A program made the translations under genes and the position numbers. From contig NC_134030.1 in the NCBI RefSeq assembly GCF_964204645.1, forward strand, positions 17,506,210 through 17,570,209: DNA of 64,000 nt, given 5' to 3'. A model generated the notes under the pieces. The model made no database searches and had not been told where the DNA came from. It saw only the letters and a list, made by a program, of their open reading frames with translations. The DNA comes from Tubulanus polymorphus. Lineage: Eukaryota; Animalia; Nemertea. Shown here piece by piece: positions 3,278 through 57,427 of the stretch (within the stretch, counting starts at the first letter, position 1; each line of letters begins with the position of its first letter).

Positions 3278-6200
3278 TCAGTCCCAACCCATGCGTTTGG
3301 GTGGGCGAATAGGACGCCCAGTTCTCGTTTGGTACGGTTGACAGTTGAGATTTGGATCGTCGCTAGGTGAAACATCGTTGCCTCGAGAAAAGACATCATT
3401 AGTTACGAGATACTCTTTTAATCGGTCACTATGGACGCATTTCTCCTTCCCGGAGGGAAGCCTGACACGAAAAATTACATCGTTAAAATTCTCAAGTATG
3501 GTACATGGCCCAGACCATAAGCATGATAGCTTTTTCGTTCTACCCGGCATTGTGGAAGGGGTATACAGCCAGACTCTAGAATCTATCGCAAATGTGTGTG
3601 GTTTAGATTTGACATTGTATTGTGTTTTGTTTCTTTCAGCTCGCTTATGAGTTTGTATGCGGACCTCGTGAAAAGACTCTGATAACCGGTGCTTCATTTC
3701 AATAACGTATTGACTGCTGATGACTGGAATTTCGCAGCGAGGACCACCTGTGATAACGTCAATGGGTAGGTCAATTTCACGACCCAACATCAATCGGTTT
3801 GGGCTAAACCCAGTTGCATCGTGTATCGTCGCCCTGTACGCCATGGTGACGTATGGTAAGTGTTGGTCCCAGTCCATCTGGTTTTCTTCAACCTTAATAG
3901 ACAGACACATTAACAATGTTCGGTTATAACGTTCGATCATTCCATTCGATTGGGGACGAAATGCGGTACTTCTGGTTTTATGGATTTGAAGGAGTTCACA
4001 CACTTCCGCCATCAATTTGGACTGGAAGTTTCGACCTTGGTCCGAATGTATGATTCTGGGGACGCCAAATCGAGTAATAAACTCGTCTACGAGTATCCGG
4101 GCGCAAGTTACTGCTTCTTGGTTCGGAATTGCGTATGCTTCGATCCACTTCGTAAAATAGTCACCAATAACTAATATATAGATGTTTCCATCATATGTTT
4201 CAGGTAATGGACCCAATATATCCATCGATACTCTCTCCATAGGTTGGCCTACCAGATAGTTGTTCATGGGTGCTTTTAATCTACTGGAGGACTTCTTTGA
4301 AGCGCACTTATCACACCCTCTACAGAAACACTTTACGTCATCACCGATACCGTGCCAAAAAAAACGATCGTGAACTAAAAAGAGGGTCTTTTTGACACCA
4401 AAGTGACCCCCGACTGCAGATGAATGAATATGGTCGAGGACTTGCTTCCTAAACTTTTCAGGTAAGATTAATAGAGTTGAGTCCGGGTAACCTTCTCTTC
4501 TCTTTATAATGTGTAAGAGCCCCTCAATCATTTTCAGATCATTCCAGTGGGTCCAATAAAATTTGCAGGCAACACCTTGTGAGGAAACTTGATGCCATCC
4601 GGGACGTTCATCATCTCGGATGTGAGCAAGGACCCATTTCAAGTCTCTTTCTTTCCCCTGTTCTAGTTTCATATTCTCGAGTGACCACTCTGACGACGGT
4701 AAGAACTCGCTGTAGGAATACGGCTTGTCGTTGTGAATTGTCATTTTCTTAACTGCTCGTTTCCTCACAGATATTGGTGTTTGTTTTTCAGAACAGATTC
4801 CTTCAATCCTCTCGCACTGACGACAGGGCATGCGCGATAGAGCATCAGCGTTACCATGGCTTCGACCCAGTCGGTGTACGATGTCGAACTGGTATGCACT
4901 CAGTAGAGATATCCAGCGAGCTACTTGGCCTTCTGGTTCTTTAAACGACATCAGCCACCTCAAGGATGAATGGTCAGTCCGGATTGTGAATTTCTTGTCG
5001 GCAAGGTAATATTTGAACTGTTTTACAAAGGCGACGACAGCTAAAAGCTCCCTGCGGGTCACGCAATAATTCCTCTCGGCTTTCGTTAAACAACGGCTAG
5101 CACAGGCGATAATTCTCTCCTTGCCCTCTTGAACTTGACTGACGACACCTCCAATTGCGAATGCTGACGCATCAGTGTCCAGGATAAACGGTAACCTTGG
5201 ATCGGGAAAAGCCAGAACTGGTGAGTGAGTCAAAATTGACTTCAGCTCACGGAAAGCTTCTTCGCATTGGACATCCCATCTGAATTCCCTCCCCTTTTCC
5301 GTCAGCCGATGAAGAGGTTTTGCAGTTTCAGCGAACCCTTGGCAAAACGACCGATAGTATGATGCTAAACCAAGGAAAGATCGAGTCTCTGTGACGTTTT
5401 TAGGAGTGGGCCAATTCTGGATTATTTCGATTTTGCTTTCTGAACATGATATACCATCAGCGGAGATATGGTGTCCAAGAAAATTGACTGACGTTCTAAA
5501 CAGCTCACATTTCTTAGGTTTTAGTTTTAGGCCAGCCTGTCGCAGACGGTTGAAGACAGTACGTAGGTTGGTCATCATCCCAAGGAAACTACCAGCATGA
5601 ACAATAACGTCGTCCAGGTAAACCAGAGCAATTTCTGGGATAAGACTTCTGAATACCTTTTCCATTAGCCTTTGAAAAGTGGCACCACTATTCTTCAAGC
5701 CCATGGGCATCTTACGGAATTGGTATAGGCCTTTCCCGCCCACAACAAAAGCTGTCTTTTCCTTAGAGTTTTCGTGTACCTTCACCTGCCAGTATCCCGA
5801 TGCTAGATCAAGGGTGCTGAGGTACTTCACGTCAGCCAGTGATCTGATAGTGTCGTTGATAATAGGTAAAGGATAACTATCTGCCTTGGTTACAGCATTA
5901 ACATCACGATAATCTAAACACAGTCGAATAGTGTTATCCGGCTTACGAACCACGACAATACTGCTGCACCACGGACTATCAGATTCTTCAATCACGCGTG
6001 CTTTCAGCATGTCATCGACTAACTTATTGACTTCTTGTGTTGCTAGGGGCAACCGCCGAAAGTGTTGTTTTGTCGGAACAGCGTTACCTACGTCGATGAC
6101 GTGTGAAGTCTCTGAGGCCTCTCCAAGATCTAAATTAGAGGAGGCGAAAACGTCCGAAAATTCAGATAGTAGTTGTTTCACATCGTGACATTCATCAGTG

Positions 6201-7075
6201 GACAGACCTTCGCAACTCCGGTGGTACAAATCTTGTAGAAATTCAGGTAATTGGTCGTTTGAATTCGACGTTTTCGATGTACTAGTTTCAGTATATATTT
6301 TAGAAATTTGTCCGATTACCCCTAAGGGTGTCCCTTTATGAATGATCTTCGGATGCGAGCTAAGGTTCACCATACGAACAGGAATATGACTACTATTTAT
6401 ATTAACGACCTCTTTAGCGACGAGTACTTCTGGCCCTAGCCTCCAGTTGTTGCTAGATTCTATTAAACCCCATTGTCCAGGTGGTAACGCCGTCTTTACA
6501 TGACCCGATACCACAACTTCAGAATTCGGAGGTAAGACTAATTTCTCATAGTTACGAACGTAGGTAGAGTTCTGTTCGAGATGGCCCGTCGGATTAGAAA
6601 AAGCTTGATTCCCCCGGCATGTCACAGTGCCGGTACCCGGGTGGATATGGCAGTCATATGCGACAAGAAAATCCATTCCTAGAATAGCATCATCTGTGAT
6701 GTCAGCGACTATCACGTCCCACATTATGTTAGAAGAAAAGAGACCCAACGGAACTCTAGCTGTCCCTGCGACATCCAGGGAGCTATTATCAGCAGTATAT
6801 AAATTATACTTTGTGTCCCTCAAGGTGAGTTTCTTCTTTTCGCTGATTTCAGAAAATAATTTCTTACTCCACACTGTGAAGTGTGCGCCCGTATCTACTA
6901 AATACTTCGTGTCACGGCCGAGAATTCTTGCAGACAGATGTATAGATTCAGGTAAAGCATTCTCATATGAAAGAACCTTGATCTTTCCTGGCTGATTAAA
7001 TTCGATAGGTAGGTGAGGATGTGTCTGTCCGGGTGTTACCCCTTCCCTCTCAGGAGTAACGGTATCTAGTTTCCC
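3278..7075 (-). CDS. pol: Pol polyprotein (aspartic protease, RT, RNase H, integrase)
   Basis: LVDTGA protease motif; LDLASGYWQ, MPMGL and YLDD RT motifs; DTDAS RNase H; HHCC zinc motif; D-D-E integrase (SMDILG, HSDQG, MIERYN); GPC (GPY-like) motif. Uninterrupted frame. Confidence 0.97.
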   Translation of the reverse strand, partial: GKLDTVTPEREGVTPGQTHPHLPIEFNQPGKIKVLSYENALPESIHLSARILGRDTKYLVDTGAHFTVWSKKLFSEISEKKKLTLRDTKYNLYTADNSSLDVAGTARVPLGLFSSNIMWDVIVADITDDAILGMDFLVAYDCHIHPGTGTVTCRGNQAFSNPTGHLEQNSTYVRNYEKLVLPPNSEVVVSGHVKTALPPGQWGLIESSNNWRLGPEVLVAKEVVNINSSHIPVRMVNLSSHPKIIHKGTPLGVIGQISKIYTETSTSKTSNSNDQLPEFLQDLYHRSCEGLSTDECHDVKQLLSEFSDVFASSNLDLGEASETSHVIDVGNAVPTKQHFRRLPLATQEVNKLVDDMLKARVIEESDSPWCSSIVVVRKPDNTIRLCLDYRDVNAVTKADSYPLPIINDTIRSLADVKYLSTLDLASGYWQVKVHENSKEKTAFVVGGKGLYQFRKMPMGLKNSGATFQRLMEKVFRSLIPEIALVYLDDVIVHAGSFLGMMTNLRTVFNRLRQAGLKLKPKKCELFRTSVNFLGHHISADGISCSESKIEIIQNWPTPKNVTETRSFLGLASYYRSFCQGFAETAKPLHRLTEKGREFRWDVQCEEAFRELKSILTHSPVLAFPDPRLPFILDTDASAFAIGGVVSQVQEGKERIIACASRCLTKAERNYCVTRRELLAVVAFVKQFKYYLADKKFTIRTDHSSLRWLMSFKEPEGQVARWISLLSAYQFDIVHRLGRSHGNADALSRMPCRQCERIEGICSEKQTPISVRKRAVKKMTIHNDKPYSYSEFLPSSEWSLENMKLEQGKERDLKWVLAHIRDDERPGWHQVSSQGVACKFYWTHWNDLKMIEGLLHIIKRREGYPDSTLLILPEKFRKQVLDHIHSSAVGGHFGVKKTLFLVHDRFFWHGIGDDVKCFCRGCDKCASKKSSSRLKAPMNNYLVGQPMERVSMDILGPLPETYDGNIYILVIGDYFTKWIEAYAIPNQEAVTCARILVDEFITRFGVPRIIHSDQGRNFQSKLMAEVCELLQIHKTRSTAFRPQSNGMIERYNRTLLMCLSIKVEENQMDWDQHLPYVTMAYRATIHDATGFSPNRLMLGREIDLPIDVITGGPRCEIPVISSQYVIEMKHRLSESFHEVRIQTHKRAERNKTQYNVKSKPHTFAIDSRVWLYTPSTMPGRTKKLSCLWSGPCTILENFNDVIFRVRLPSGKEKCVHSDRLKEYLVTNDVFSRGNDVSPSDDPNLNCQPYQTRTGRPIRPPKRMGWD
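7010..7075 (-). promoter_or_regulatory. -1 ribosomal frameshift signal (G GGA AAC plus downstream stem)
   Basis: Heptamer GGGAAAC at 7075-7069 sits directly before the gag stop, followed by a GTTACTCC/GGGGTAAC stem. Pol is in the overlapping frame. Confidence 0.75.
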
Positions 7076-8115
7076 TGCTTCTTTGTGTAACTCGACTTGG
7101 ATTGTTCCCATGGTCTATTGGGAGCTTGTCTTCGACCTCCGAGGTGGGGACAATTGACTCGGATGTGGCCCTGTTGGTCGCAGTTAAAACATCTTCGATT
7201 TTCTGCAGAGGTTGGGTTCTGCGTTTTAATAGCCCGGACGTCAGCGGCCAACCGGGTAACAGCATCCGTCAGTTGTTGGATAGCCCTGGAATCATCAGAG
7301 TTCGCGACAGGCGTGGAGGTGACCGCGTTTATTTGCGACCTGACGTTCTCATGGTGTCGATTATTTTCCATCGCGTGTATGCTCTCTAATTCGAGCGCAT
7401 AATTTACCAGTGCATCATATGAGCATGTATCCTTCTGATACATCAGAACCCGAGTCTCGACTTCTGGAAGGGCCTCGATAAAATGGTTCCGACAGAGGCG
7501 TTCCCTCTGTTTTGGGGTCAAGTCCGGATAGGCTAATCTTCCCATAGAAATGATCGTCTGACCAAGTTCCCTCAGCGACTCGCCTCGTTTACGTCGACGA
7601 GATCGTAATTCTGCAAGATGAATTTCTGCTCTATGGCTTGGTCCGAATCTACTCTCCAGAGCTGCACATAATTGAAAATAATTAGTTATTTTATCTCCCA
7701 TCAGATTGCAAGCTAATTGTCTGGCAGCACCACGTAGATGAGAAAACAGCATATCAGCTTTAGTTGGCGAGTCCCATCCATTCAGACGAGACACCGTCTC
7801 GAACGTTAAAAAGTAATCATTCCACGGTTCATCACCATTGTAACACTCAGGTTTTATTTTGCAGGTCAAAATACGGGACACTTGACCCGAAACATCAGTG
7901 TGGGAAGATCGAGACCTGTTCACTTCAACAGGTCGAGGAAACTCATCAACGACTGGAGCATCAGCGGGTCTAGGGGCCCCGGCATCAGGATAGTCTCCAG
8001 AACTTCGGTTTACGAGCTCAGCAGGCAACAAAGCTCTGTCTCCTAGGACCAAACTCTCGGAGCTACGACTCCGCGTCACACTTCGAGACATCCCTCGAGT
8101 TTCACGACGACTCAT
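7066..8115 (-). CDS. gag: Gag with CCHC zinc knuckle
   Basis: 'KPECYNGDEPW...LRGAA...LESRFG' capsid-like region and a CFNCDQQGHIRVNC knuckle. Lies upstream of pol. Confidence 0.92.
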   Translation of the reverse strand: MSRRETRGMSRSVTRSRSSESLVLGDRALLPAELVNRSSGDYPDAGAPRPADAPVVDEFPRPVEVNRSRSSHTDVSGQVSRILTCKIKPECYNGDEPWNDYFLTFETVSRLNGWDSPTKADMLFSHLRGAARQLACNLMGDKITNYFQLCAALESRFGPSHRAEIHLAELRSRRRKRGESLRELGQTIISMGRLAYPDLTPKQRERLCRNHFIEALPEVETRVLMYQKDTCSYDALVNYALELESIHAMENNRHHENVRSQINAVTSTPVANSDDSRAIQQLTDAVTRLAADVRAIKTQNPTSAENRRCFNCDQQGHIRVNCPHLGGRRQAPNRPWEQSKSSYTKKQGN

Positions 8116-10743: not shown

Positions 10744-11417
10744 CACAGGGGCTCGTATCAGAGTTGTAGGTAATGTAAAAACGATAATCTGTTAATCCAA
10801 TGTATATAGTATATATAAAATAACAAGGGGGCTAACGACGCTCACAAACTACTCAACTTCAGTCGCTTACTTTTTCGTTATTTTTCATCCGATTTTGATA
10901 ATCCAGGCATGATATGAAAGCTAATACCTTCCTGCTTCTAGCGAAACTAATCCCGTCAATTTCCGATGAATAGTTCGTGAATTATATGTCTTTGAACGCG
11001 AAATTAGGGCCGAAATCGCCTGGACCGAAAATGCTATGACGCCAGTTTTTGCCGATTTCGAAATTTAAAACGTTGAGTTCGACACGAAATCTTTCACCGA
11101 TTTTGATGATCGAGGACTTCAAATGCGCAGAATACTCTATATTTTCTAAATATTGCGGTTGTTTCGTTAATCCATACGATCTTCCAGCTTTGAAAACGCG
11201 AATTTCCGATTTTACGTCAATTCACGAACTCCATGCGCGATTGTTAAAATCGGATTATCAAAATCGGATGAAAAATAACGAAAAAGTAAGCGACTGAAGT
11301 TGAGTTGTTTGTGAGCGTCGTTAGCCTCCTTGTTATTTTATATATACTATATACATTGGATTAACAGATTATCATTTTTACATTAGCCTACCTACAACTC
11401 TGATACGAGCCCCTGTG
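10744..11417. mobile_element. MITE with ~165-bp TIRs and an 8-bp TSD (hAT- or P-like)
   Basis: cacaggggctcgtatcagagttgtagg... at the left, its reverse complement ending at 11417. GCAGCCGC flanks both sides (10731-10738 and 11418-11425), with an extra CACAG on the left. Confidence 0.85.
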
Positions 11418-12783: not shown

Positions 12784-13974
12784 TAGGCCTAGAGGGTAAT
12801 GCCTCTAAGGTTATTTTTGGTCTAGGGATGGATCCAAATGTTTCACCATGCCTGAGCGGTTTCTGAGTCGTGCTGAACTGGAAGGGCAACTATATCATAG
12901 CACAAAACGGGGGACATGGGGGCACTCCCCCAGAAAATTTTGATTTTTCAAGGCTCTGAGATGCAATCTTTAAGCATATTTGGGGCATAAAGTCTATCCC
13001 CACCAGCTACTATGCGTTTGGACTTGTTCCTGTCAACTAATCCATCACACTCGATAGTCAAAGGATTTTTTTTTAAACCGCATCATTTTGTGCAGAAGGG
13101 CCTGACCAGAAACAGAATTTGTTTTTTTGGCCTAAATATCTTTAATTTACTGTATAAATATTCTAGTCAATTTAGTGAATGCGGAATTGTGTTTGAACAG
13201 AAAGCGATTCTGATTAGGGGGGAGGGGGCGTGGGTTCATAACACAGAATGAGACTTGTTTTATATCTAGAGTTTATCAGGTAAAAACCTTACATCCTTTT
13301 ATATCTAAACAACAAAAAGTCCAAAAAGTAAAACTCTTAAACTTTTGCATCACAAGGGCGAAATTGATAATGTATGAGTTTACATAATCGTTGGTGGTAA
13401 ACTTAGATCTCAGCATTTCAGAGTTAATGATGATTTTAACGAGATTTTCTGACATCAGTGATAGATATCTTTATCGTGTAATATATAATACATGTAGTTC
13501 ATTCACTTGCAATTATTATTTTAAACGGTACCCAGCCCTCTTATTACGTCACTACAGAATTATGGAGTAACTACACAATACAAGGAAGGTTAGGCGCTTG
13601 ATGTATTTTATACCAGGTCTCCGACACAAAACGACATAAATTTATCATTCTTCAAGTCATAATTTCTAAGCGCATTGTCGGTTAGTTTGGTCGGCTGTCG
13701 CAAAAAGAATATATCTTTGTTAGTCATACAGCGATTATTTAACAGTAAAGACAATTTCTGATTCCACGCTGAACAGGGTCCATTGTTTCTATTTTGATAT
13801 TTCTAAATCGACCGACGATTCCAATATTTAGGGATAGTTACTGCGCCAGCAACAGCAGTTGACAATGGATAGTCAACTTGTTTATAGATGTATTACAAAC
13901 AATTAGGTCAGGAAAAATGTGCTGCACTTAAATTGAGATGAAATGACTGAAGAATTCTAAATTTTGTTTTTCAG

Positions 13975-14070
13975 TAAGCGGTACTATGGCGGAGAGTAAT
14001 CCAGGAATAAATGCAGAAAATGTTCGCGATGACGAGGAGCAAACCGTCGATAGACCTGTTGAGAATCTGG
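13975..14070 (+). CDS. NLR N-terminal cassette exon A (96 nt, phase 1-1): MAESNPGINAENVRDDEEQTVDRPVENL
   Basis: tttttcag acceptor and G|gtaattat donor. Paralogous to exons B-D. Confidence 0.7.
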
Positions 14071-14454
14071 GTAATTATAGATTTTAATCATCAAGAGTTC
14101 AGTTCAGTACAGAATGATGTGACTCGAGTCCAAATGTGATCTCGCATATAAAACCCGTGTAATGTTTTGAGACGTCTGACTGATTCACACATTTATGCCT
14201 GGCTTTAACAAAGCAGCTTCCCTTCCTGCGTAATGAATGTCAATGAAATCAACTTTTGGAATCATTTATTTTTATTTAAAATTATTTTATTAAAATCCAT
14301 GAAAGAAACTGATTCTAATTACATTCATTCCAATGTAAGACTGCCGAGTATGCGCCCCTTCCTCCGGCAGGTTAAAACAGTATTCAGTGATTTAGAAGAT
14401 ACAAGTCTTCTCGTTGCAACATCTAACATAAGTTAGTCTTTTGCTGACACAGTT

Positions 14455-14630
14455 GTGAACTGTCTGACAGCTAGGGAACTCTCTGATAGCTGGTGAACTT
14501 TCTGACAGCTAGTGAACTGACAGCTAGCTAGTGAACTTTCTGACAGCTCGTGAACTGACAGCTAGCTAGTGAACTGTCTGACAGCTAGTGAACTGTTCGA
14601 CAGCTAGCCAGTGTGCTGTCTGACAGCTAA
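14455..14630. repeat. Short tandem repeat (ctgacagctagtgaact-like)
   Basis: About 8 degenerate copies are visible. Confidence 0.75.
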
Positions 14631-14683
14631 TGCGCTGCACTTATCGAGATAGAATGACTGAATTCTAAACTTATATTTTTCAG

Positions 14684-14839
14684 TACACGGTACCATGGCG
14701 GAGTGTAATCCAGGAATAGATGCAGAAAATTCTGAAATTGATCAAATCAGTTCAACGAATAAAACAAAGTATATTAAAACCACACATGAATATCACTACC
14801 GTGGAGAGCAAGCCATCAACAGACCTGCTGAGAATCTCG
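14684..14839 (+). CDS. NLR cassette exon B (156 nt, phase 1-1): MAECNPGIDAENSEIDQISSTNKTKYIKTTHEYHYRGEQAINRPAENL
   Basis: Same acceptor, donor and flanking codons as exons A, C and D. Confidence 0.75.
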
Positions 14840-17079
14840 GTAATTATGAATCCAGAAATGAACGCACCCACCCGATTGTTCTTAAATCTTATTTCAATAT
14901 ATTCTGTCCGCCAGGTAGCGTAAGATTGTCAAGCCCAGTTGGGATTTTAGTCCCAGTTGACTGTTGGCCTTGTTGACCTTGTTGACCTTGGATCTTTAGA
15001 GGTCTCTGCAGGTCTTTACCCCGGTTCTTAAACCCCTGTTTGGCTCGGCGTTTGGGAATTTACTCGTCGTTCTCAGGGTGACTTATACCCTAGTTAACTT
15101 TGTCTGTGGGTTTTTGCCCCAGGTTGAACTTGCACTGTGGTAGTCTACCATCAAGAAGCAGCTGCTTGATTGTTTAGACCTGTGCTTGGATATCTATCGC
15201 TTACATACACAACTCCCGTTCTCTCATGACCTTGTTAGTTTAGGGAAGAGAGGTTTGTTGTTAAGCCTATAACCTTGTTGGAAATTAATCTAGACGTTGT
15301 TGATGAGTTTTGGAAGAAGGAGAGAGGGATGAGAAAGGGAAAAAGGGATAGATAGTCGCCTGATCTGATCATCTGGGTCCCTGCATATCGGAATGCGAAA
15401 GTCATTTCCTCCCAATACTCTATAGTGGACGAGTATACATAGGGGGAGTTGATGTCACTGGGGAAACAGATACATTCTTGCGCACCTTACAAATTTGCTT
15501 ATGTTCCATTCTAATGAAATACATCTTGCCTTTTTCCAAACATTTTGCCCATGAACTTTCTTCGTGTTTTATGCTTTATTTTTTATTGGTGTCTTTTCCA
15601 ATTCTTTCTTAATCAACCGATGTCTATCCCTACCTTTTTTAGTTTACCCTTGTCAGCGATATGAAGTTGGCATTGAGCCAATTTCATGTAAATTGCGGAA
15701 CGTTTTTTTATGTGAGCATTTGTTTCATTGGTTCTCGGGTTAAACGACGTATAATCGATGCGCTTGAAGACATGACGAACCTCTGTCGGATGTACATGGT
15801 CAACTTTGTTAAAATTCTACGATAAACTGTTTTTGTCGGGAAAATTCTTAGCTCTCATGTATAAAATTGCAATGACCTCGATGGGGGGGGGGGGCGTTGT
15901 CTCTACGAGTGAATGTGATTGGCTGTTTTTGGGATATACGGGGAATTCCGGCGCTAATAAAATAATTATGGGAAAGCCATAGAATGGCGAACGTTTCATT
16001 GGACTAGGTGCCGTATACGTGCAAATTTCAAATGCTCATTGCTGATGAGAATGTAATTATTATCCGCCATAGGTATTGTTTCATTTTGATACCCAGTGAT
16101 TGATTTGATTGACACTGAAGTGTAAGCGAACATTCACTTACACAATGCCTCCACATGCGCGCGGAGTGCTATAGTCTGTTGCATACACAAACACACGCTC
16201 GTACAGTATACACTACTATAGTGATATTGGAAACGCTGCTTGCTGGCGCGTCTGACATTTCATCAACAGAAGATGAGCGCTATGTTTTCTGTTTGATATA
16301 ATTTATAATAAATTGTAATTTCTTGTGACCTGAAAATATTAGGCAGCAAACTACAAGTATAGGTCGAGGTCTGAATATTGTAGAAGTAAATTCCAGGATT
16401 TAAAACGATCTAATACGCCAATTTCTTACTGCGTCGGTTTAGATTCCGCGGTCATACATTGGAAGAGGTTTCCAAGACTAAATATTCAGCCACCCTCTGA
16501 TATGTGACATCATATGAATCTTATTTGAATATTTTTTCATATTGTGAAAAATATTTCTTTGAAAATATAAAATAGTTTCCCTGCCGCGCCTACCTGTACC
16601 CTACGAAATTTTGGACATGGACCAAACAAATGTATATTTTTGGTCTTATTTGACTACAAAATAATTCTTTGAGAAAGATGAAATACAATATAGAACTTTG
16701 AAGTCACGAAGTAAAAAGATTTTTCAAGCAATGCCCTTAACCTCAAACAACCTCTAGCTTTCAAGGTAAACCACACTTTGCCCATGGGCAATTTATTAGA
16801 TTGCTCCATTTTTCCATTGGCCGTTCCGTTAATATCAGTTGTCTTACCGTCGAAAAAGCAGAACCCTTCCAGAACCCTTCCAGAACCCTTCTAATCTATT
16901 TGGGCCTTTACATCGCAGAGCAATGAAATTTCAGGCAAATTAACCTGAAATTATCGATAAGGCAATCATAAAAATGTTAATCTAATACAGATGTGACTGG
17001 ACACATGAAAACAATTCGGTCAGAAAAATGTCTGCACTTGTTGAGATGAAATGACTGAATTCTAATTTCTGTTTTTCAG

Positions 17080-17218
17080 TACATGGAACTATGGGCGGAG
17101 AGTAATCCAGGAATGAATGAAGACAATTCTAAATTGAGTGTAAGCGGTGACAGTAATACGAGGATCATAAGTATCAACGCAGTTACACGAGCCATCAACA
17201 AACCTGGTGAGAATCTCG
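17080..17218 (+). CDS. NLR cassette exon C (139 nt; one extra G after the ATG): MAESNPGMNEDNSKLSVSGDSNTRIISINAVTRAINKPGENL when corrected
   Basis: Same splice signals. ATGGGCGGAG here versus ATGGCGGAG in exons A and B. Confidence 0.7.
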
Positions 17219-18225
17219 GTAATTATAGATCTTAACCATCAGATTAAATTTCATCTTATACAGAAGTGACTTGAGTCCAAATGTGATCTTACAAATATAA
17301 ACCGGTCTAAAGTTTTGAAGCGAAAGAAATACATTGTCTTTAAAGATTCTGAGGACCAAAAAGGACCCACCAACTCGATTGTTTTAAAACTTTGACTAAA
17401 ACTGTCAGGGTCTGGTGATATAATCGGTATTTTGAATTATGGTCTCTTATCAGATCTGGTGACACAGTTTGTTTATCAGTCCAGGGTAAATATAAAAACA
17501 TATAAACAGTTTAGCAGTAAATACTGTTAACAGTAAAATAAGACCGCCGGGTGAAAGTTACCGTAATCAATTACTATCATGTTTCAACCCTAACCCTATA
17601 ATTCAAAATGGGCCTGGGCCCAATTGGCCCGACCGAAAACGTCGGACCAGATCCGGGTCAACTGGTTTCGGTAGTGACTCACTTCGCTTTGTTTATCAAG
17701 TGAGTGGTTAGCCTGTAAATGCCATCTCTTGGGCCAAATACGGGCCAAATTTGACTCGGACCTGTACCGGGCCAATTTATAGTCGTTAGTATCGAGTTGC
17801 ACAATATCAGACATGATTGATATTACGTGGAAGATTGCTACATGTAGGAGTGAACTCATCATGGGTTAGTTGAGTTCAGACATATGATTGACTCTCCAAT
17901 GTAGCAATCCTGTAATGAAATGAAATGTAAGTTAATCAAATTTCTGAACTCATTAATACCGATTTTAATTGTTTTAAGCCCCATGAAAAATATATGATGT
18001 CATTAAATTGAAAGCTTAATTAACATTGTCAGTAGTTCTCATAAATTTTCCTTGGCCATTTTTTCCTACATTCCATTATCCTTTATCAGTAGCGGAAACA
18101 AAGAAAACTTCAGTCTGAATAAGAGTAGAGGCTGATTGTGTAAATACTGGACAAAACAATTAGGTCAGGAAAAATGTCTGCACTTGTTGAGATGAAATGA
18201 CTGAATTCTGAATCCTGTTTTTCAG

Positions 18226-18357
18226 TTCGTGGTACTATGGTAGAGAGTAATCCAGGAATGAATGTAAATGAATCGATGGTTCAAATGGGTGACAACAATA
18301 CGATGAATGTATACCTTGGAGATACACAAACTATCGACAGACCTGCTGAGAATCTCG
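18226..18357 (+). CDS. NLR cassette exon D (132 nt, phase 1-1) with RHIM-like motif: MVESNPGMNVNESMVQMGDNNTMNVYLGDTQTIDRPAENL
   Basis: Same splice signals. VQMGDNNTM closely resembles the RHIM core (I/V)Q(I/V)GxxNx(M/L). Confidence 0.78.
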
Positions 18358-19429
18358 GTAATTATAGATTTCTACCATCAGAACTCGTGCTTGAGTCCAA
18401 ATGTGATCCTAAATCATAAGACTGGTCCGAAGTCTTTGGCCATGTCTCTAAAGATCATTCTAAATCTTTAACTAAAATGATGGAAAATTATTTCAAGACA
18501 TTCTATCCACCAGGTGGCGTATGATTGTTTAAGCCTAGTTGGGACTTTAGTCCCAGTTGGCTGTTGCTTTCACTTTTTGCCCGTTCGTCCGTAGATGGAA
18601 TCCAGTTATTTTGGGAAGTTTCATTGGATTGTTCCTGTTCACGATCAAGATGGCTGACAGGCAGCCATATCGCACATATTTATTGCTATTGGAAGAACTT
18701 GTGACTGACACCTACTCAAAATCTAGTAAACATACGATCAGTTTTTATAGCCACATTTCAGGCATGAATTGCTCGATTGTTCATTTTTCAGTCACGAATT
18801 AATTAGCTCCACATTCTTGCACGCCTTGCAAATTTGCCTCTGTTCCATTCTAATTACATACATCTTGCCTTTTTCCAAACATTTTGCCCATGAACTTTCT
18901 TCGAGTTTTATGCTTTATTAGTAATAGGGTTTTAGTTGTTTAATATCAGAGGTTGAAAGGTGGAGGAAATATTACTAATTTTCAATTGGTTATATTTTCA
19001 TAATATAAGATTAATAAACATTTTGTACTGTGATGAAAATTCCATGTTGATGCGCGGCATAGTTTGCAGTATTTACTGCGGAGCTGTGATGATAGCGCCC
19101 TCGTTTTAGTAAAACGTGAAGCTCACCAAAATCAACAAAGCCGTTTATCTTTAGATTAAGTATAATTTTTGAAAAAGGTGAAAAAGCCGACTTTTTTAAA
19201 AGTGGCTTTTTGGAAATATTTGCCTCGTGTAGATTGAAAATAAAAGATTTTTCCACTCGTGTAGATCGGACCTTGAATGTCTCAGATCGAACTTGTTGCT
19301 AACCCGACCCCACAGAAAGATTCTTTCTGGTGCAAATTTTGCCACCACAATCAATTGCAAAGTTTAAGCTCATGGCATGTTGTATGATTGTGGTGAGTTT
19401 CAGGTTTTTTGGTTTTTGTTCATTTATTG

Positions 19430-19917
19430 TTGTTGCTTTCAATAAAGTAGGGACCGGCAAAATTGTGAAATTTCCTGATATAAAAATGCACGTATAGGGG
19501 ATTCTAGAAAACGTGTTTGGATGTTTGACTCGCAATTACGTTAAAAGCACATAAGACCACATATTGATGGCTATTGATCCTGAAAACTTCAAAAATGTAG
19601 ATTAAAATTTGTAAGAATTACAAATTTTATTATATTTTGAATGAGATGAGCAAAAATTCAAGTTGAATTATCGGGATGAAGACTATATCAATGTTTATAA
19701 CTTCACCAGCGCGCATTGTTGCATTAAATTAAATAAATGAGTGATATCGTAGCAGCTGAGTTCATCGATATTTTACTTTGTTTCTATCTTAATCCAATCC
19801 AGAGATATGATTGAAATAAGAAAATTAAAATGGTGAAAAAATTGGGACAATTCAATTCCACAATGCGGACCCGGTGGGTAGCCAAAAATAGCGCCTGGCA
19901 ACTGTAAAAAGACTTAT
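19430..19917. mobile_element. Copy of one arm of the long-TIR element found at 41826-44024
   Basis: Clear similarity to ~43520-44024 (ctagaaaacgtgttt...gcgcctggcaactgtaaaaagacttat). Confidence 0.8.
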
Positions 19918-20132
19918 CGCGTCTCAACCGACTTACACCCGGCTTAAAATATCTCAAACTGATTTCCTTTTTGTGGTCGGGTTGGTATTTCCTTGGTACC
20001 TAGGCATATTTTGTAACTGCGGTCAATTGTAAAATTTTAGCTCATGACATTTTCAATGATTCTATGATTTTGAGGCATAATCAGCCGCCATAGAAATTCT
20101 GAAAAAAATCTCAAACTGATTTTATTTTGCAG

Positions 20133-22830
20133 ATGTTGATCAAGTTCAGAATTGTCTGAAAGAAACATGTCAACGAATGATCGATGTTGAAAATTACAAA
20201 GAGGTTCCATGGAACGATGAAGTCACCAATTTCAACGACTTCTTCACTCGAGAACACGTGAAAACTCGAGCGCAAAAACGAAACCCGAAGAAAAATGAAA
20301 AAAGTGAGGAGCAGTCATTGATTTTACCCGATGATTTCAGAAAACTTTTTACCTATGGAGCGAGTGATGTGAAACCCATGTGCCTCGTAGGTGAGCCCGG
20401 TATGGGTAAAACCACGCAGATTGTAAAGCAAGTTTCTATTTGGGACAGCTCACCATTTCTAAAAACATTTCCTATGTTATTCTATATACCGTTAAATGAA
20501 CTGCCCGCTGAAAATGCGTGTATTTATACGTACATTTACAAAAATCTTTTGAATCCAGAAATCAGAAAGGTTCTGCCGATTGATAGTTTTAAAGAATTCT
20601 TACCGGAAAATGCAAAAAAGCGATATTTTTCCTAGACGGCTTCGACGAGTTGAAAAGCGAAGGAATACATCGTACACGTGACCAATGAATTACCGAAAGC
20701 GCATATCGTCATAACAACACGTGAGTCCGGGGCAGCAAGATCGTCACTGATCCCAAATTCACAGTTGTATCGATATCCGGCTTCAAAGAGGAAGAAATCA
20801 TCGATATTATGAAGAGAAAATTCCCCGAGCGCGATCCAAAACAGCTATTCTGTGAGCTTGAAGATGCAGCGTCACCTTTATTTAATAGTATCTACTACAA
20901 CCCGCTGATACTACTTATGTTTTGTTTTCTGTATATGGACGAGGAAGAAATTACGATACCATCAAAACTCACCGATATCTACATCGATTTGACATGTTTT
21001 CTGATCAGTAAACGCGAGGGCATCGAGTTGTCGAAGGAATGTTTTTTTGGTGACATCGAAAATTCTGAAGCGCTTAAAGAAATTTGTCAAGTCGCGTATA
21101 AGACGCTCATCGAGCATCAAAACGGCTTCAGCGAAAATCGTCACAAACTCGACGAATCGAGGAGAACGGCTTTGACGTGCAAAGAGGTGTCGCCGCGACA
21201 GAAATCAGACCGCTCCGTCCAGCTACGGTTCATACACAAATCTGTGCACGAATTCCTGGCGGCGGTACACTCGGTCGTGCAATTCAACAACAGTGGTGAA
21301 ATACCCTGGAATAAATGCGCGTTTGAACAACTACAGGACGAACTTGTGAAATATGGTGAATTATACCCGAGATTCATGGCAGGGCTGCTGTATCGTTACA
21401 AGTATAACCGCGGCCTCGGTGAACTTTTCAAGACTTTAATAGATGAACAAGCAGTCACAATAGTGAATAGGCACGAGTCATTGTATACGGTTACTAGGGA
21501 GATGGCGCTCATCCCCGATTACGAATGCTACATCGAGCTCCGATCTGAAAGAACTGTTTTATCTGAACAGTTGTTAATCTGCCTGAATGAAGCCGACTGG
21601 CCGTACGACGCCATTAGTGAAATAGTTCCCTACATGCAGAAAATGTTGTTCGTATCTACATATAGCAGATCGCAGATAAACATGTTCGCAAAAATACTCG
21701 AACACAAACAATGTCAGATCGAGCTAGTTTACATAAAGTATTTTGACAAACTGAAACCCGACGACCGCCGCGTATTAGAAACAGCCATAGCGAGTAACAC
21801 TAGTCTTCACGGTATGATAATACACGGGTCATCAATACCCGATCGGTGCTTGACTATGTGTAAGAAGAGCAAGAGTATAAACTGGTATGTGTGGCGAGGT
21901 AGAATCTTCGACATTGGTGAATGTTACAAGAAACTCGATAATGATTGGATTAAGACAAGTCACGTGATCAGATCTGAAGATGACACGCAGTTGATCAGTG
22001 GTGATACTAACACACACAATACAGTGGAGAGTCTGTTTATTGATACTGAAGTTAGTACGGAACGTTTAGGTAATATTCACAAATCGTATCCATTCTTAAA
22101 ACATCTATATCTCGGATCGTGGGGATATCAGCTCGATGAAAATATAATCAGAGGGCTGATAAACATCATTCCGAGTTTGAAAAGCTTATATCTTAGTGAT
22201 GTAATATTCGATAAGAATTTGATCGGTTCGGAGGGAATAAAAGATTTTAACAACACGTTAAAATCTTCAGACATCGAAACAATTCAGCTCAAAATGCGCG
22301 AACTAACCACAGATCAATGGACAACAGCAATCATTGATAGCGTCGGTTCAATGCCGAAACTAAAACGTCTTATCATTGACGAATTAGATTTACAAATAAA
22401 CCGCGTTGTAGCTCACCTGCCGCGGCTGACTGTACTATCAATACGGTTGCGGTCAGAAGCTGATGGTGACGCACTTGTTCGGTATCTATCATCAGCTGCG
22501 AGAAGTCATTATTTATAGCTATCTCGATAGACCGGAACAGAACAATCGCATCTTACAACAATTAAAACACGTCTCATCAATTCGTTGGTTAGAGTTTTAC
22601 ACTTTACGAGCGCCGTTTAATACACAGCACGATATCAATTTATTCGTCAAATTAATCGTCGAATTAATCAATAATCTTCCGCATCTTTCTGACCTGGATA
22701 TCCTCTGCTACAGCACCGACCCCGATCGACGGAAGGTTACATCACATCAGAACTTAAAAACGTCAATAAAAGACTGAGAGTAAAAATATGGGTTGAAGCA
22801 CCTGCAGATTCATCAGATGAATCTGATTAA
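20133..22830 (+). pseudogene. NACHT-LRR (NLR) main exon with several frameshifts (pseudogene or assembly errors)
   Basis: The phase-1 acceptor at 20132 joins the cassette exons in frame. Walker A GEPGMGKTT; Walker B IFFLDGFDE and IVITTR in shifted frames (20615-20780); NPLILLMFC; FIHKSVHEFLAA; LRR-like repeats (LKHLYL, LKSLYLS, LKRLII, LTVLSI). Further shifts near 22500 and 22740. Confidence 0.9.
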
Positions 22831-23228
22831 TCTGATGTATCATCGCTATCGGAGTTGAGACGCAAATTAAGTAGATTCATCGATTCATAAGATTCAATCA
22901 ACTAACACGCATTTTGTACACAGTCACTTCCTAGAAACAGAACAGAAACTGAACTGATATTAAACCGCAGTTTGTCCTATATGTTCTGAATTTTGGGTTG
23001 TTATGCATGGCATGTTACAGCTTGGCAGCCCACGTGGGTTTGTTCAGTGGACTTCCCTGAACACGAAAATGACCGCTGCCCAATTTTCATTGTTACCGTC
23101 GTTGCCATTGCCATGGCAACCGTAACCAAATTTCCAAAAAGTGACCATATGGGGCTAGATTTTGGAATTCACATTATATATGTGTGAAATCTTATTGTCG
23201 GAAATTGAAGTAAACTTTACACATGGTA

Positions 23229-23673
23229 TCAGATTATCTCGGAAAAAAACTGCATTTGTTGAGATTTATTGCCATGGTGACCGCAAAATCTTTGATTTTC
23301 TCATTTTGTGTGTGTTTTTTCGGCAAATGTAGTTGTTCTATATTTGATTTGCTTCACAGGTTTTAAACAATTTTTTTCTTAAAACATCTCCACATTTGGT
23401 GCATTTTGAATATAACATCGAACATGACTAGTATACCGTAGTTGAGATGGGAGGTAAAATTGATCTAAAGATTTTACCTCCAACTGTAGGATCATTAAAA
23501 CCACACGTCCGAAGGGCGCAACTGCAAACATTGATTTGGACAGCACAAGTATTCAAGCCCGAATTCCATGATCCACAGTTATATTTGCCGAATGAGAAAA
23601 TCAAACATTTTGCGGTAGCCATGGCAATAAATCTCTACAAAATAATGCAGATTTTTTCCGAAATAATCTGATA
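23229..23673. mobile_element. Internally deleted DNA transposon, possibly Academ-like
   Basis: Inverted repeats at 23229-23306 and 23591-23673 enclose a fragment encoding LPPTVGSLKPHVRRAQLQTLIW (LPPT..L..H..RA..Q...W motif). Confidence 0.5.
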
Positions 23674-26886: not shown

Positions 26887-27324
26887 AGTAATAGGGGTAA
26901 TGGGCTTTCAAGCCAAAGGTCGAACGGTCGAGCTCATTAAAAAACAAAACATTAAAAGTAATTTAAAACTATAATATATTTTCATAACCGTGTGCTTTTT
27001 ATATTATAACTAAATATTTATTCTAAGATATCAATAATTTAAATTTTGAATGCATATTGTATTAAATCACATGTATTGTATTAAATAATATTGTATTGGT
27101 CGCTCCGCTTCGCTGCCGCTCCGCTCCGCGACCAATTGATTTATTTACAATACACAAATTCATATAATCAAATATATTTTAATAATAATAATAATTATTC
27201 TATTATTCAACTGAAATACACACGGTTATGAAAATATATTATAGTTTTAAATTACTTTTAATATTTGTTTTTAATGAACTCGACCATTCAACCTTTAACC
27301 TGAAAGCCCATTACCCCTATTACT
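26887..27324. repeat. Left terminal fold-back (arms of ~110 bp)
   Basis: 26887-26994 is the reverse complement of ~27218-27324. A nested GC-rich hairpin lies at 27095-27136. Confidence 0.88.
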
Positions 27325-27557
27325 CTTAAAATAATAATATACATGAATAACATTTAAATTGACAGATTATTCAATATAAAAGTGTAAGCTCTTATAGAAT
27401 AGATATATAGATATATTTACAACATTATTTCAATATTCATATTTCTATGAGTTAGATTTTTAAACATTAAAAGTGTTAGTAAAGTGTGATTGAAATAATA
27501 CATGATATAAATCATTGAACTTCTAAAATCAATTTAGTAAAAAAATATGTATAATAA

Positions 27558-28234
27558 ATGGAACCAGAATAACCACAAACTATAAATATTACAAATAACA
27601 CTGGTGTCATAAACATATACTACAAGAAGTGTTCTAAGTGTGAATTAGATAAATTAGCTTTAACAGAATTTAGTAAGCGTAAGATTAGCAAAGATGGTTT
27701 TCAATATTGCTGTAAAACTTGCACTAAACTATATACCAAACAATATCGAGAAGATAATATAGAACATTATAATTATTATATGGCAGAATATATGAGAGTA
27801 AGATATCAAACAGATCTTAATTTTAGATTGAAACAATGTTTAAGATCTAGATTAACACAATTATTCAACAAAGAAACACATTCAGAAACACTATCTAATT
27901 TGTTGGGTTGTACAGATGAATTTCTCAAATCATGGATAATATATCAATTCGATGATAAAATGAATATAGATAATTATGGTGAATACTTTCATATTGATCA
28001 TGTGTTACCGATATCTAAATTTAACATGAATGATGAATACAATAAAAAACGTATTTGGGGTTGGAAAAATTTAAGACCTTTAGAAAAGAAGGAAAACATA
28101 ATTAAATCTAATAAACTAGATTTACAGTTATATTGAGAACAGTTAACAAAGGCAAAGAAATTTATTGATCAATGGAACAATGATCCAAATAATGAACAAT
28201 ACGTTGAGGAATTTGATACCAAGGATCCGAAATG
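27558..28234 (+). pseudogene. Zinc ribbon plus HNH-type endonuclease of the kind found in large DNA viruses; two in-frame stops
   Basis: The ATG at 27558 is in frame with ORF 27780. CSKC...CKTC, then 'LLGC...HIDHVLPISKF...WKNLRPL..KENIIKSNK'. Confidence 0.75.
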
Positions 28235-28536
28235 ACTTATCTGGACAGTTATAATTACTGCTCCTAATAGATAGACAATAGTAGTGAGATATTAAATAGA
28301 ATTCAAATAAAATATATTAAAAAAAACAATAACTTCAACTAGCCATTATTTCTATTTTATTTTTAATATTTTCTTTTTAAAAAAGAATACTTTATATCAC
28401 AAATAAAAAATACTAAAGAAACAATAACTAATACTAAAATTCTTTACCTTTAACTAAGCTAGTATTAATCTAAAGAGATACTGGTATCATTTTATAATAC
28501 TTATAATATTTTTCTTGTTAAATTTCTCTAATATAA

Positions 28537-29133
28537 ATGTCAAAGTAATCGAGTAAGAATAGTATTGATATTGAAAAAACATTAGATTATTTGGGCATAA
28601 GTGATAATAAGGATATTCCAACCAAAATTGAAAATAATATTCAAGTTAATTGTAATATAGATTATGAATACTACTTATATTGTAAACACCATCTTGAATT
28701 ACTAATTGCTGGTGGAAAATCTAAAGAGTTTTTAAATAGAATTATTACTTTTCAAGAATTAGATGCTATGAAACCAGATAAAGTAATAAAACATTTTAAG
28801 ATTTATGAAGAGTCAAGATTAGCTAGAATAAATGATTCTATTTCAGATGGTATTGTCAAATGTTACTCTAAGTTATGTAACCAGTTAATACCAATTAATG
28901 ATGAAAATAAATTATATAGTGATTTGAAAAATGACTATTTAGTTATGACTGAATTACAAAAATGGGTTGGTTATGTTTCATTTCAATTAGGATCGGTTAT
29001 GACATTAATTTCTACTGGTGTCATAACATTTTCGAACATCAAACCTATGGAATATAAATCAGGTAAGAATGAAACAGATGTACTACAACCAAACGCCGAA
29101 ACAGAAAATGAATCAGAACCAAACATTAACTAG
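28537..29133 (+). pseudogene. Viral hypothetical protein with a hydrophobic C-terminal segment (stop at codon 4)
   Basis: TAAATG start in frame with ORF 28591. Part of the compact viral gene array. Confidence 0.55.
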
Positions 29134-29138
29134 AATAA

Positions 29139-29504
29139 ATGAGTGATGGAGTTAAGAAAAAGGTTAGATCTGAAAAACAAATTAAATGGGCAAGAGAATT
29201 AGGTAAAGATCTTCAGAATTAAAAAAGCTAAGAAAAGGAAATTAACTGATATAAATGAATCACAGACTTTATCTGATATTAATTCAAATAATAATCCATC
29301 TAATTCTTCTAATAGTGGAAGAAATAATTACTTATATATTACAATTGGATTAGTAACAGTTATTATATTATCCGGTGTAATACATAAATCAAAATTCAAA
29401 TCAGATGATAAATATGATTCCAATGACAATAAACCTATCATACCAGAAAATAAGTCAAATCATAAAGTCACTGAAACTAAATCTAAATTATTATTAATGG
29501 ATTA
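29139..29504 (+). pseudogene. Small basic membrane protein, frameshifted
   Basis: MSDGVKKKVRSEKQIKWARELGK, then a TM-like YLYITIGLVTVIILSGVI in a shifted frame. Confidence 0.45.
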
Positions 29505-29511
29505 AAATAAG

Positions 29512-30603
29512 ATGAAAAAAGGACAATATTTAAGAGAGTTATATTACAACCCAGAAAGTGAAGTATCATATTCTAACGTTTCAGAATTATGGAATAAAAT
29601 TAAATCTGATAATGAAAATGGTGATATAAAATATAGTGAATTGGAATCATGGTTACAAAATCAACCAACATATCAAATCCACAAGAAAATGGATAAAACT
29701 TATTTAACAAGAAAAGTTATGGTTTCATATATTGATCAACAATGGCAAGCAGATTTAATTGACATGAAGAACTTAGAGGAATACAACAAAGGATATTTCT
29801 GGATACTGAATGTTATAAACATATTCAGTAGATACGCATGGTCAATTCCAATCAAAAATAAAACTGGAATAGAAGTGACAAATGCTTTTAAATCTATATT
29901 TAAAGAAGCTATTCCAGATAAGATACAATTTGATGAAGGTAAGGAATTTTATAACAAACATTTCAAAATACTATTATCTGATAACGATGTAGATTATTTT
30001 TCAACACACTCAGATAAAAAAGCATCTATTATAGAAAGATTTAATAAAACATTGAAATCTAGAATGTGGAAATATTTTACTGCTAATGAAACATATAAAT
30101 ATATCGATGTATTAGATGATTTAGTGAAAGGTTATAATAATTCTAAACATAGTTCTATAAATATGAAACCTATACAAGCTAGAAAAGAAGATAATTCAGA
30201 AATAGTTTGGAATAATTTATATGGAGCATTTGTTACACATGATTTCGGAGAACTTAAATTTAAGATAGGACAACACGTTAGAATATCTAAATATAGAAAA
30301 ACATTTTATAAAGGTTATACCCCTAATTTTACAGAAGAAATATTTAAGATTAAAAAGATAATATTAACTAAACCTTTTGTTTATAAATTAGAAGATCTAA
30401 AAGATGAAGAAATATTAGGTTATTTCTATGAACAAAAATTATCACTTGTACCAAATCCAGATGAAATTGAATACAAAATAGAAAAAGTATTGAAATCAAA
30501 AATTCTTAAAGGAAAAAAGTATTCTTTGGTGAAATATAAAGGATATGATGATAAATTTAATAAATGGATTTTATCTAGTAAAATTAAAAGAATAAATGAA
30601 TAA
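29512..30603 (+). CDS. Maverick-type retroviral-like (c-)integrase with C-terminal chromodomain
   Basis: LYYNP, WQADL, QFDEGKEF and IIERFNKTLK (DDE); FYKGYTPNFTEEIF; YKIEKVLK...LVKYKGYDDKFNKWI chromodomain. Intact ORF. Confidence 0.93.
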   Translation: MKKGQYLRELYYNPESEVSYSNVSELWNKIKSDNENGDIKYSELESWLQNQPTYQIHKKMDKTYLTRKVMVSYIDQQWQADLIDMKNLEEYNKGYFWILNVINIFSRYAWSIPIKNKTGIEVTNAFKSIFKEAIPDKIQFDEGKEFYNKHFKILLSDNDVDYFSTHSDKKASIIERFNKTLKSRMWKYFTANETYKYIDVLDDLVKGYNNSKHSSINMKPIQARKEDNSEIVWNNLYGAFVTHDFGELKFKIGQHVRISKYRKTFYKGYTPNFTEEIFKIKKIILTKPFVYKLEDLKDEEILGYFYEQKLSLVPNPDEIEYKIEKVLKSKILKGKKYSLVKYKGYDDKFNKWILSSKIKRINE

Positions 30604-31207
30604 AGATTTATTTATATTCGAACCGCATAATATGTTAGTTACTGGAGTAACCAATTGTGGTAAAACACATTTCATATTAGACTTGTTAGAAACTATTTAT
30701 AAGAATCATTTTGATAATATAATATTATTCTGTCCTACTTATGAAATGAATAAAATGTATAATATAGATATAGTTAAGATAAAAAAGTTTATTATATTAA
30801 ATCCTTAAACAGTAAAAGAAAATTTAGATAATTGTATAAAAATAGCAATTGATACTTATAAAGGATCAAATACATTATTCATTATAGATGATTGCGCAAA
30901 TTTACATGATTCAAAAGTTAGAGAAAGTGAGTTATGTTATCTAGCTTTCTCTGGGAGACATTTTGGGATAACAACATGGGTTTTAAATCAAAAATATAAT
31001 TCAATTGTTAAAGACTTTAGGGAGAATATAAGATTTCTAGTTTTATTTTATAACAAAGATAGAAAATCTATGCAACAATCATTGGAAGAAAATCAAATTA
31101 TACCTACTGAGTTACATGATAAATATATGAATAAATTAAAGAATAATAAAGGTTCAAAATTATTACTGAGATTACAATTTCCATATGAATATAAATTTAT
31201 AAAATAA
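30596..31207 (+). pseudogene. A32/FtsK-type DNA packaging ATPase (one in-frame stop)
   Basis: Walker A GVTNCGKT. Past the TAA at 30806 the same frame gives LFIIDDC and SGRHFGITTWVLNQKY. Confidence 0.88.
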
Positions 31208-31570
31208 CTATTTGTATACCTATGTATTAGATACCCTATTAGATACCCTAATACCTGATACCCTATAAGATACCCTATTAGATACCTTAAATACTTAAAA
31301 CCCCCTTTTTTTAAAATAAATATTATTTATACAATTTTCAACCAATTTATTTTTATTTTTTCAACTAATATATGAATAAGTTTGAAAATAATAAAGGTTA
31401 TTTATTATTACTGAGGTTTCAATTTCCATATGAATATAAGTTTATAAAATAAGATATTTTATGTATTAGATTGTATTAGATTGTATTAGATATGTATTAG
31501 ATACCTTAAATACCTTAAATACTTAAAACCCCCTTTTTTATTTACTATTATTTTATACAATTTTCAACAA
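31142..31570. repeat. Direct duplication (~200 bp) between the convergent viral gene blocks
   Basis: 'aataataaaggtt...ccatatgaatataa...gtattagataccttaaatacttaaaaccccc...tatacaattttcaac' occurs twice. Confidence 0.75.
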
Positions 31571-31600
31571 ATATTATTTGTGTTAAATATAATTAATATC

Positions 31601-32476
31601 TTAATCACTTTCACTATCAGACCCTAACAATCTATTCAAATGCTCTACCGAATCTACATCAATAGTTGTTTTATTTTTATACTTTTTCATCCTTTCTACC
31701 GCATCATCAATAGTTTCTTCTTTATGTTTCATAGAATCTTTATTATCAATATGCTTATCTGTAACTATATCACCATGTGGGTGCCATACGGCACCATTTT
31801 CATAATTATCTTTATTAGTGTTTGCTCCTAATATTTCATTTACAGTGTTTGCTCCTAATATTCCATAAGCATCGGTTAAATCTAATTCATCTTTATTAGG
31901 CGTTGCTAATAATAAATCTTCATATAATTCTTTACCATTTACTTTTTTATTTGAAACATATCTAAATGGGTGTTCTATAAATTCTCTTTTACCAACACGT
32001 TCTATAACATTATTTATATGTACCTTTGTATTCATATGTTTATTCCAATTTGATGGAGCGTTTGAAAATTCACCTTTAAAATAATCACAATAATTTCTAT
32101 TTTCACTAACATTTAATATTATTGCATTATTATATGTAGAAGGTATTACATTATTAGATGTAGAAGGTATTACATTATTAGATGTAGTAGGTATTACATT
32201 ATTAGATGTAGAAGGTATTACATTATTAGATGTAGTAGGTATTACATTATTAGATGTAGTAGGTATTACATTATTAGATGTAGAAGGTATTACATTACTT
32301 AAATTATCAACAACACCACTTTGATCATTATCGATTTCTATTAGTTTAGTTCTATAAATTTTGAAAATAGGATAAAATATCAAAGCTATATTACAAGGTA
32401 TTACATAATATAAACCATCATTATTTTCATGTGTATCGATGTATGGAATATGTTTATATACTTTACCTCCTTCCAT
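31601..32476 (-). CDS. Viral hypothetical protein with 8-aa NNVIP(S/T)TS repeats and a degenerate zinc finger
   Basis: Intact 291-aa ORF with a TAAATG start. 24-bp tandem repeat at ~32128-32297. Confidence 0.6.
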   Translation of the reverse strand: MEGGKVYKHIPYIDTHENNDGLYYVIPCNIALIFYPIFKIYRTKLIEIDNDQSGVVDNLSNVIPSTSNNVIPTTSNNVIPTTSNNVIPSTSNNVIPTTSNNVIPSTSNNVIPSTYNNAIILNVSENRNYCDYFKGEFSNAPSNWNKHMNTKVHINNVIERVGKREFIEHPFRYVSNKKVNGKELYEDLLLATPNKDELDLTDAYGILGANTVNEILGANTNKDNYENGAVWHPHGDIVTDKHIDNKDSMKHKEETIDDAVERMKKYKNKTTIDVDSVEHLNRLLGSDSESD

Positions 32477-32508
32477 TTATTATATAAATTTTTATTAAAG
32501 TTAAAATT

Positions 32509-33760: not shown

Positions 33761-33777
33761 TTATTTAACAAAAAAAT

Positions 33778-34528: not shown

Positions 34529-34609
34529 TTAGTAAAGTGTGATTGAAATAATACATGATATAAATCATTGAACTTCTGAAATCAATTTAAAAAAAAAATT
34601 AGTATTAAA

Positions 34610-35194: not shown

Positions 35195-35463
35195 AATTTT
35201 GATGATAAACCAATTATCTATAATGAAAATTCATCAAATATTGGTATTCAACGTGAATTAGATAATAATAATTCTTATAAAGATATTGGAATTCAATGTA
35301 ATTTAGATGATGAAATTGTTGCGCCTAAATATATAATCCTAATGAAAGCGTTTTATGTAATTGTGGAAAATATTATACTCGAGGCAATAAATCACACCAT
35401 CTCAAATCAAAATATCATAACTCCAAATATGGAAATCAATTTTAATAAAAATATGTATTATAA

Positions 35464-38900: not shown

Positions 38901-39069
38901 AGTAATAGGGGTAATAGGCTTTCAGGTTAAAGGTTGAAGGGGCGAGTGAGTAAAAAATGAAAATAATAATAATTTACAGTTGAATTAGGAGTGTGCGCGA
39001 CTATTATTTTCATTTTTAACTCACTCGACCCTTCGACCTTTGATCTGAAAGCCTATTACCCCTATTACT
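38901..39069. repeat. Right terminal fold-back (arms of ~65 bp)
   Basis: agtaataggggtaataggctttcag... pairs with ...ctgaaagcctattacccctattact. Confidence 0.88.
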
Positions 39070-53457: not shown

Positions 53458-53466
53458 GTGGACAGA

Positions 53467-57412: not shown

Positions 57413-57427
57413 TACAGTCACTAGATC

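Follow-up and report, generated by a model that had tools for sequence, protein, structure and literature searches.

The 64,000-nucleotide stretch analysed here (the window; G000:C6:17506210-17570209, C-numbers being the chromosomes or scaffolds of that assembly) comes from the nemertean Tubulanus polymorphus. On its forward strand lies one member of a family of NLRs, nucleotide-binding leucine-rich repeat (LRR) receptors, in which four short paralogous exons, here called cassettes A to D, precede a single NACHT-LRR exon (20133..22830). The initial annotation took it for an animal NLR that signals through an amyloid motif and can pick or combine motif variants by splicing. We find that the family carries a RIP homotypic interaction motif (RHIM) by score, while the window's own copy is probably a pseudogene.

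The description of the exons holds. Cassettes A (13975..14070), B (14684..14839), C (17080..17218) and D (18226..18357) are 96, 156, 139 and 132 nt long, all on the forward strand. All four have an acceptor reading TTTCAG, an ATG 11 nt behind it and a donor reading G and then GTAATTAT. A, B and D are symmetric (phase 1-1) and C is one G longer; the acceptor at 20133 suits a phase-1 donor for an in-frame join to the NACHT exon.

About 1 kb upstream of cassette A (13013..13974, forward strand) is common to the stretches 5′ of the first cassettes in other arrays, matching at 92–97% on C56 and C8 and more weakly on C9. The other cassettes of the window share only about 100–150 nt of upstream sequence. 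The 13013-13974 region is thus a candidate single promoter or 5′ non-coding exon region. A 19-nt tandem repeat (14436..14644) lies directly 5′ of cassette B.

As the initial annotation did not notice, the single NACHT-LRR exon has five frameshifting deletions of 1, 8, 1, 14 and 1 nt near 20615, 20654, 20729, 22491 and 22727 relative to five intact paralogues. Its frame runs for 166 codons to a TAG at 20633-20635, before Walker B, so that Walker A (20390-20413) is kept and Walker B (20624-20653) is out of frame. The NACHT piece scores 29.4 bits (Pfam cut-off 26.7) and the intact paralogues 55–65 bits. In the window and the paralogues alike, NLRC4_HD2 matches in its expected place with 17.9–19.8 bits, below the cut-off of 33.1. 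LRR_2, LRR_14 and LRR_Zer-1 match only weakly, and the leucine-rich repeat pattern is seen by eye.

Because of the frameshifts in its NACHT-LRR exon and the degenerate cores of B and C, the window copy does not stand as the working receptor first proposed. It could at most yield a truncated protein of about 300 residues.

The motif status of the cassettes was judged by the Pfam RHIM profile (PF12721, cut-off 20 bits). The whole genome has five loci above the cut-off and three of them are D-type exons of the NLR family, two of these being near-identical duplicates. By direct scans, the D-type exons of two distinct paralogues score 22.4 and 22.0 bits. Window D, with its RHIM-like VQMG at 18279-18290, reaches 13.8–15.4 bits and falls below the cut-off; compared with the best paralogues, it has one loop residue fewer and a Met at the third tetrad position. 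Cassette B gives no Pfam RHIM match.

The core tetrad (V/I)-Q-(V/I/L/C)-G is deleted in A, replaced by DQIS (for VQIG) in B and by SVSG in C. Cassette C instead has a hydrophobic-x-hydrophobic-x-G-D-S/N-N motif that is displaced relative to the RHIM register. Numbered as in RIPK3, the whole I-V-V-I aliphatic tetrad and the Gly are present in the best D paralogues and in three exons on C9 (tetrad definition in bioRxiv 10.64898/2026.02.19.706818), in the same register as three non-NLR RHIM proteins of the same genome. Hence, the proposed link to the RHIM stands for the family: judged by score, the NLR family qualifies as RHIM-bearing and the window's own cassettes do not.

The cores are less different than they were thought to be. 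The ends of the exons are conserved as described, but the view that the cores are unrelated is rejected, as B, C and D can be aligned to a common RHIM register with 46–61% nucleotide identity. The same alignment confirms that the acidic cassette A is motif-less (RHIM-null); it equals an IQLG-bearing paralogous exon (C6:17628200-17628319) minus 48 nt, in frame. The register alignment and the deletion origin of A point to descent of all four cassettes from one RHIM exon, with only D still RHIM-like. C-type cassettes occur also in paralogues on C1, C8, C9, C12, C32 and C56, and by sequence C is an old variant class whose hydrophobic residues are shifted by one.

The cassette flanks have recombined against the cores. 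Identical A cores carry leaders only 62–66% identical; A cores are 32–37% alike to C or D cores, yet preceded by introns 96–100% identical. This recombination yields conserved ends with different cores without selection on the ends, so the conserved ends are rejected as a proof of selection.

In the search for paralogous loci, the T. polymorphus genome gave at least 22 full NACHT-LRR exons belonging to the family, most of them intact. Sixteen of the 20 exons read have 827–989 open codons, so that 16 of the 19 paralogues read are open through NACHT and LRR, and about a quarter of the family loci read are broken. Homologues of the window NLR are RefSeq proteins from T. polymorphus, and the closest relative outside Tubulanus scores 156 bits with a match limited to the NACHT region. 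The family is thus Tubulanus-specific, and it is probably of the birth-and-death type. A strict RHIM pattern occurs in none of about 140 non-Tubulanus NACHT relatives.

Genome-wide, exon D has 48 DNA matches and the exon profile has 57, nearly all adjoining NACHT-LRR paralogues, so the exon set is far beyond chance. Many paralogues have exon arrays similar to the window's and others have a single exon. The initial annotation saw no CARD, death-domain or PYD exon, which holds for Death and CARD, as neither matches near any family locus, the match lists being lower bounds and the search not extending to DED or PYD.

Other arrangements and duplications occur around the family. The same NACHT-LRR exon is joined to Ig-like domains and a transmembrane helix in P0007, P0010 and P0025 (C6, 22.3, 18.37 and 18.44 Mb), and the P0008 paralogue has a different N-terminus, probably a coiled coil. 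Loci L005 and L006 (C6, 18.09 and 17.61 Mb) differ by 0.07%, so the duplication either is very recent or arose in the assembly. Scaffolds C32 and C56 look like the C8 cluster, of which they may be alleles. Three identical C-type cassettes (L037, L039 and L040; G000:C1:19744997-19749155, reverse strand) lie in 2079-nt tandem units on C1, where neither of two genome searches reports a NACHT exon of the family.

Searches with pieces of the window took one exon at a time, and the joined forms are RefSeq proteins. XP_074653384.1 (297 residues) is an exact match to B, C, D and the beginning of the NACHT exon, one after the other. LOC141909593 has isoforms with A+C+D, A+C, A+D and A alone, LOC141909594 with A+C+C and A+C+D, and LOC141914658 with C only and D only. 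Alternative RefSeq models normally rest on transcript alignments. As modelled in RefSeq, the cassettes are spliced in series with optional skipping from one upstream region.

The arrays may have originated from a change in the leader. Array exons have an 11-nt leader that is read through; single-exon paralogues have one of 10 nt, which makes the exon asymmetric, or 20 nt with an in-frame stop. Array loci cluster together in the NACHT tree with moderate support (82/90). Going by this correlation among relatives, the 11-nt leader may have made the first coding exon symmetric, so that its tandem copies stay in frame, and unequal crossing-over would then expand and shuffle the array.

One paralogue, the C9 repeat, repeats the first part of the RHIM motif inside a single exon. 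Its internal repeat array was modelled by AlphaFold2 from the single sequence as a beta-solenoid, with a predicted local distance difference test (pLDDT) score of 72 and a predicted template modelling score of 0.72, which is only suggestive. A structure search with this model returned generic beta-helices only, a matter of shape and not of kinship, and an atlas search with C+D returned no usable match.

Taken together, we moderately favour the account that the window holds a recently broken member of an NLR family whose first coding exon ancestrally specified a RHIM, whose cassettes are joined serially, and whose intact paralogues would signal through RHIMs. It is unlikely that the window gene is intact and its frameshifts are assembly errors, although every lesion is an indel and two of them lie in runs of G. 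The 865 aligned codons hold no nonsense codon and the branch ratio of nonsynonymous to synonymous differences (pN/pS) is 0.59, like that of intact paralogues, which suggests recent breakage and leaves some room for assembly error. However, the 8- and 14-nt deletions and two 1-nt losses outside homopolymers are atypical of consensus errors, and the frames of an adjacent retroelement (1277 and 349 residues) are open. Of the five deletions, a single one falls in a homopolymer, and the 8-nt deletion coincides with a direct repeat of at most 7 nt, which makes a genuine pseudogene more likely than an error of the assembly. The RefSeq protein, too, ends at 297 residues, but on the same assembly. Less probable still is a choice of one cassette with its own ATG per transcript, by mutually exclusive splicing or alternative first exons as in Dscam or the protocadherins. 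The ATG kept in most cassettes, the conserved intron flanks and the C-only and D-only isoforms of LOC141914658 would suit it, but every cassette has an acceptor, TTG replaces ATG in seven array exons, and the long upstream region is common to first cassettes only. Moreover, the RefSeq isoforms are mostly serial and no flank duplex of the docking type pairs better than shuffled controls. Mutually exclusive choice is rejected on the serial isoforms, the acceptors throughout and the lack of pairing above shuffles; of the proposal to pick or combine, the combining accords with the RefSeq isoforms of intact paralogues and the picking of one is unsupported.

A lesser but real possibility is that unequal crossing-over within a recombining cluster produces the arrays as a near-neutral by-product; one RHIM exon or none would then signal, the extra ones would be tolerated spacers or decaying copies, and the skipping would be splicing noise. 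Cassette number and order vary at every locus, the A copies are almost identical, the broken loci are as frequent as given above, and the single-exon paralogues do without arrays. In the C cores, pN is 0.134 and pS 0.149 (pN/pS about 0.9), and the ratio is about 0.6 in the D cores and 1.6 in the LRR region, all from pooled, non-independent pairs, so the evidence for selection is thin. Against near-neutrality, 27 of the 29 array exons read keep their frame and splice sites, the old C class recurs on five chromosomes or scaffolds and keeps P, D, N, S, G and N unchanged, and the motif was multiplied on two occasions, once in exon arrays and once in repeats within one exon. Besides the C-core ratio, several findings weigh against the favoured account of serial cassettes and RHIM signalling. 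RefSeq junctions can stem from mis-mapped reads among near-identical paralogues, and LOC141914657 X1 joins cassettes from two separate loci across a whole NACHT exon. At least one intact array locus, the one on C56 with its NACHT at 34523, shows no cassettes but A and C within the 6.9 kb that were read, and no partner carrying the C motif was found. A concatenated A+C+C model is unstructured (pLDDT 40), which is uninformative.

If the favoured account is right, serial joining would give the receptors a disordered N-terminus of one or several units, which may be RHIM, RHIM-variant or RHIM-null. The intact members would sense through the LRR and oligomerise through the NACHT, and the oligomerisation would cluster the N-terminal RHIMs to seed the amyloid of a RHIM adaptor, possibly a RHIM-Death protein or a TICAM-like protein. 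The variant and null cassettes may set the spacing or the threshold.

Both kinds of adaptor have candidates in the genome. An exon on C3 encodes a TICAM-like TIR fold, the TICAM-like identity resting on Atlas, followed by a RHIM of 21.7 bits. On C7, a strong Death-domain match follows a RHIM at a distance of about 700 nt, and a RHIM followed by a Death domain is the layout of RIPK1 and IMD. These two, unlinked to the window locus, are plausible cognate partners as far as their sequences tell.

The effector search thus gave RHIM proteins on C3 and C7, and also a gasdermin match (G000:C1:23769399-23770676, reverse strand, E 1.7e-12). In a survey, Nemertea are recorded as lacking GSDME (PMC11508797). 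MLKL_N has no match in the genome but its control is equally silent, so the result is uninformative. Another RHIM (L070; G000:C8:4552388-4552432, reverse strand), at the end of a proline-rich exon, scores 19.7 bits by hmmscan.

A further-reaching proposal is doubtful: that the intact paralogues regulate which RHIM, variant and null cassettes are combined and so tune or redirect the amyloid signalling of a single NLR gene, with C as a second amyloid motif having its own partner.

Elsewhere in the window, a Gypsy-type long terminal repeat retroelement (3278-8115, reverse strand) has an open gag (349 residues) and pol (1277 residues) and lies about 5 kb 5′ of exon A. A very AT-rich block of 22–26% GC (27000-39000) holds an integrase-like and other virus-like open reading frames and is Polinton-like. 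A PIF1-helicase / PHD gene and transposase-like fragments occupy 53458-62411. Two elements resembling miniature inverted-repeat transposable elements, with long inverted arms, lie at 10744-11417 (134 nt, 98%) and 23227-23673 (51 and 30 nt, about 92%).

The nearest known layout is that of Branchiostoma floridae BF82280, a RHIM-NACHT protein (Kajava et al. 2014, PMC4262963). Both put the RHIM at the N-terminus of an animal NACHT protein, the usual place of a death-fold domain. The Tubulanus family differs in belonging to another phylum, in being lineage-specific and in placing its motifs on symmetric exons that have been duplicated and include variant and null forms. Tandem RHIMs have been noted in several invertebrate proteins (PMC4262963). 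In the literature searched (RHIM-NACHT in lophotrochozoa, RHIM tandem exon duplication), we found no description of arrays of symmetric RHIM exons. The RHIM-NACHT layout is already known from amphioxus and the array of RHIM-derived exons is without a precedent found.

Among fungal and bacterial amyloid-motif NLRs are NWD2/HET-S and PNT1/HELLP, the latter with the PP motif (PMC7889193, PMC12881547). They share with the Tubulanus family a short N-terminal amyloid-type motif on a receptor of the STAND class (signal transduction ATPases with numerous domains), and presumably the templating of a partner. Unlike them, the Tubulanus family has an LRR sensor and diversifies through exon arrays, and no effector gene is seen adjoining its locus.

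The D paralogues resemble the mammalian proteins RIPK1, RIPK3, TRIF and ZBP1 and the insect cRHIM proteins IMD and PGRP-LC in the tetrad, the glycine, the downstream N-x-M and the upstream hydrophobic-x-hydrophobic spacing, although none of these is an NLR. Window D departs from them by its Met, outside V/I/L/C, and its one-residue deletion. Arthropod Dscam is an exon-modular immune receptor with mutually exclusive exons. As in Dscam and in NLRP3 with its LRR exon splicing (PMC6642158), symmetric paralogous exons permit alternative splicing. In Tubulanus, unlike both, it is the signalling end that varies, a single exon makes up the sensor and the joining is serial in the RefSeq models.

NLRs are listed as absent from Nemertea (PMC11508797) and the Tubulanus family contradicts this. 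In the literature searched, amyloid signalling by NLRs is established in fungi and bacteria, and in animals is only predicted, for one amphioxus protein. The window copy, being broken, is a poor test subject. The family, however, offers in one genome a natural series of intact RHIM, degenerate, variant, null and internally repeated motifs together with candidate partners, so the amyloid question would be testable with short peptides.

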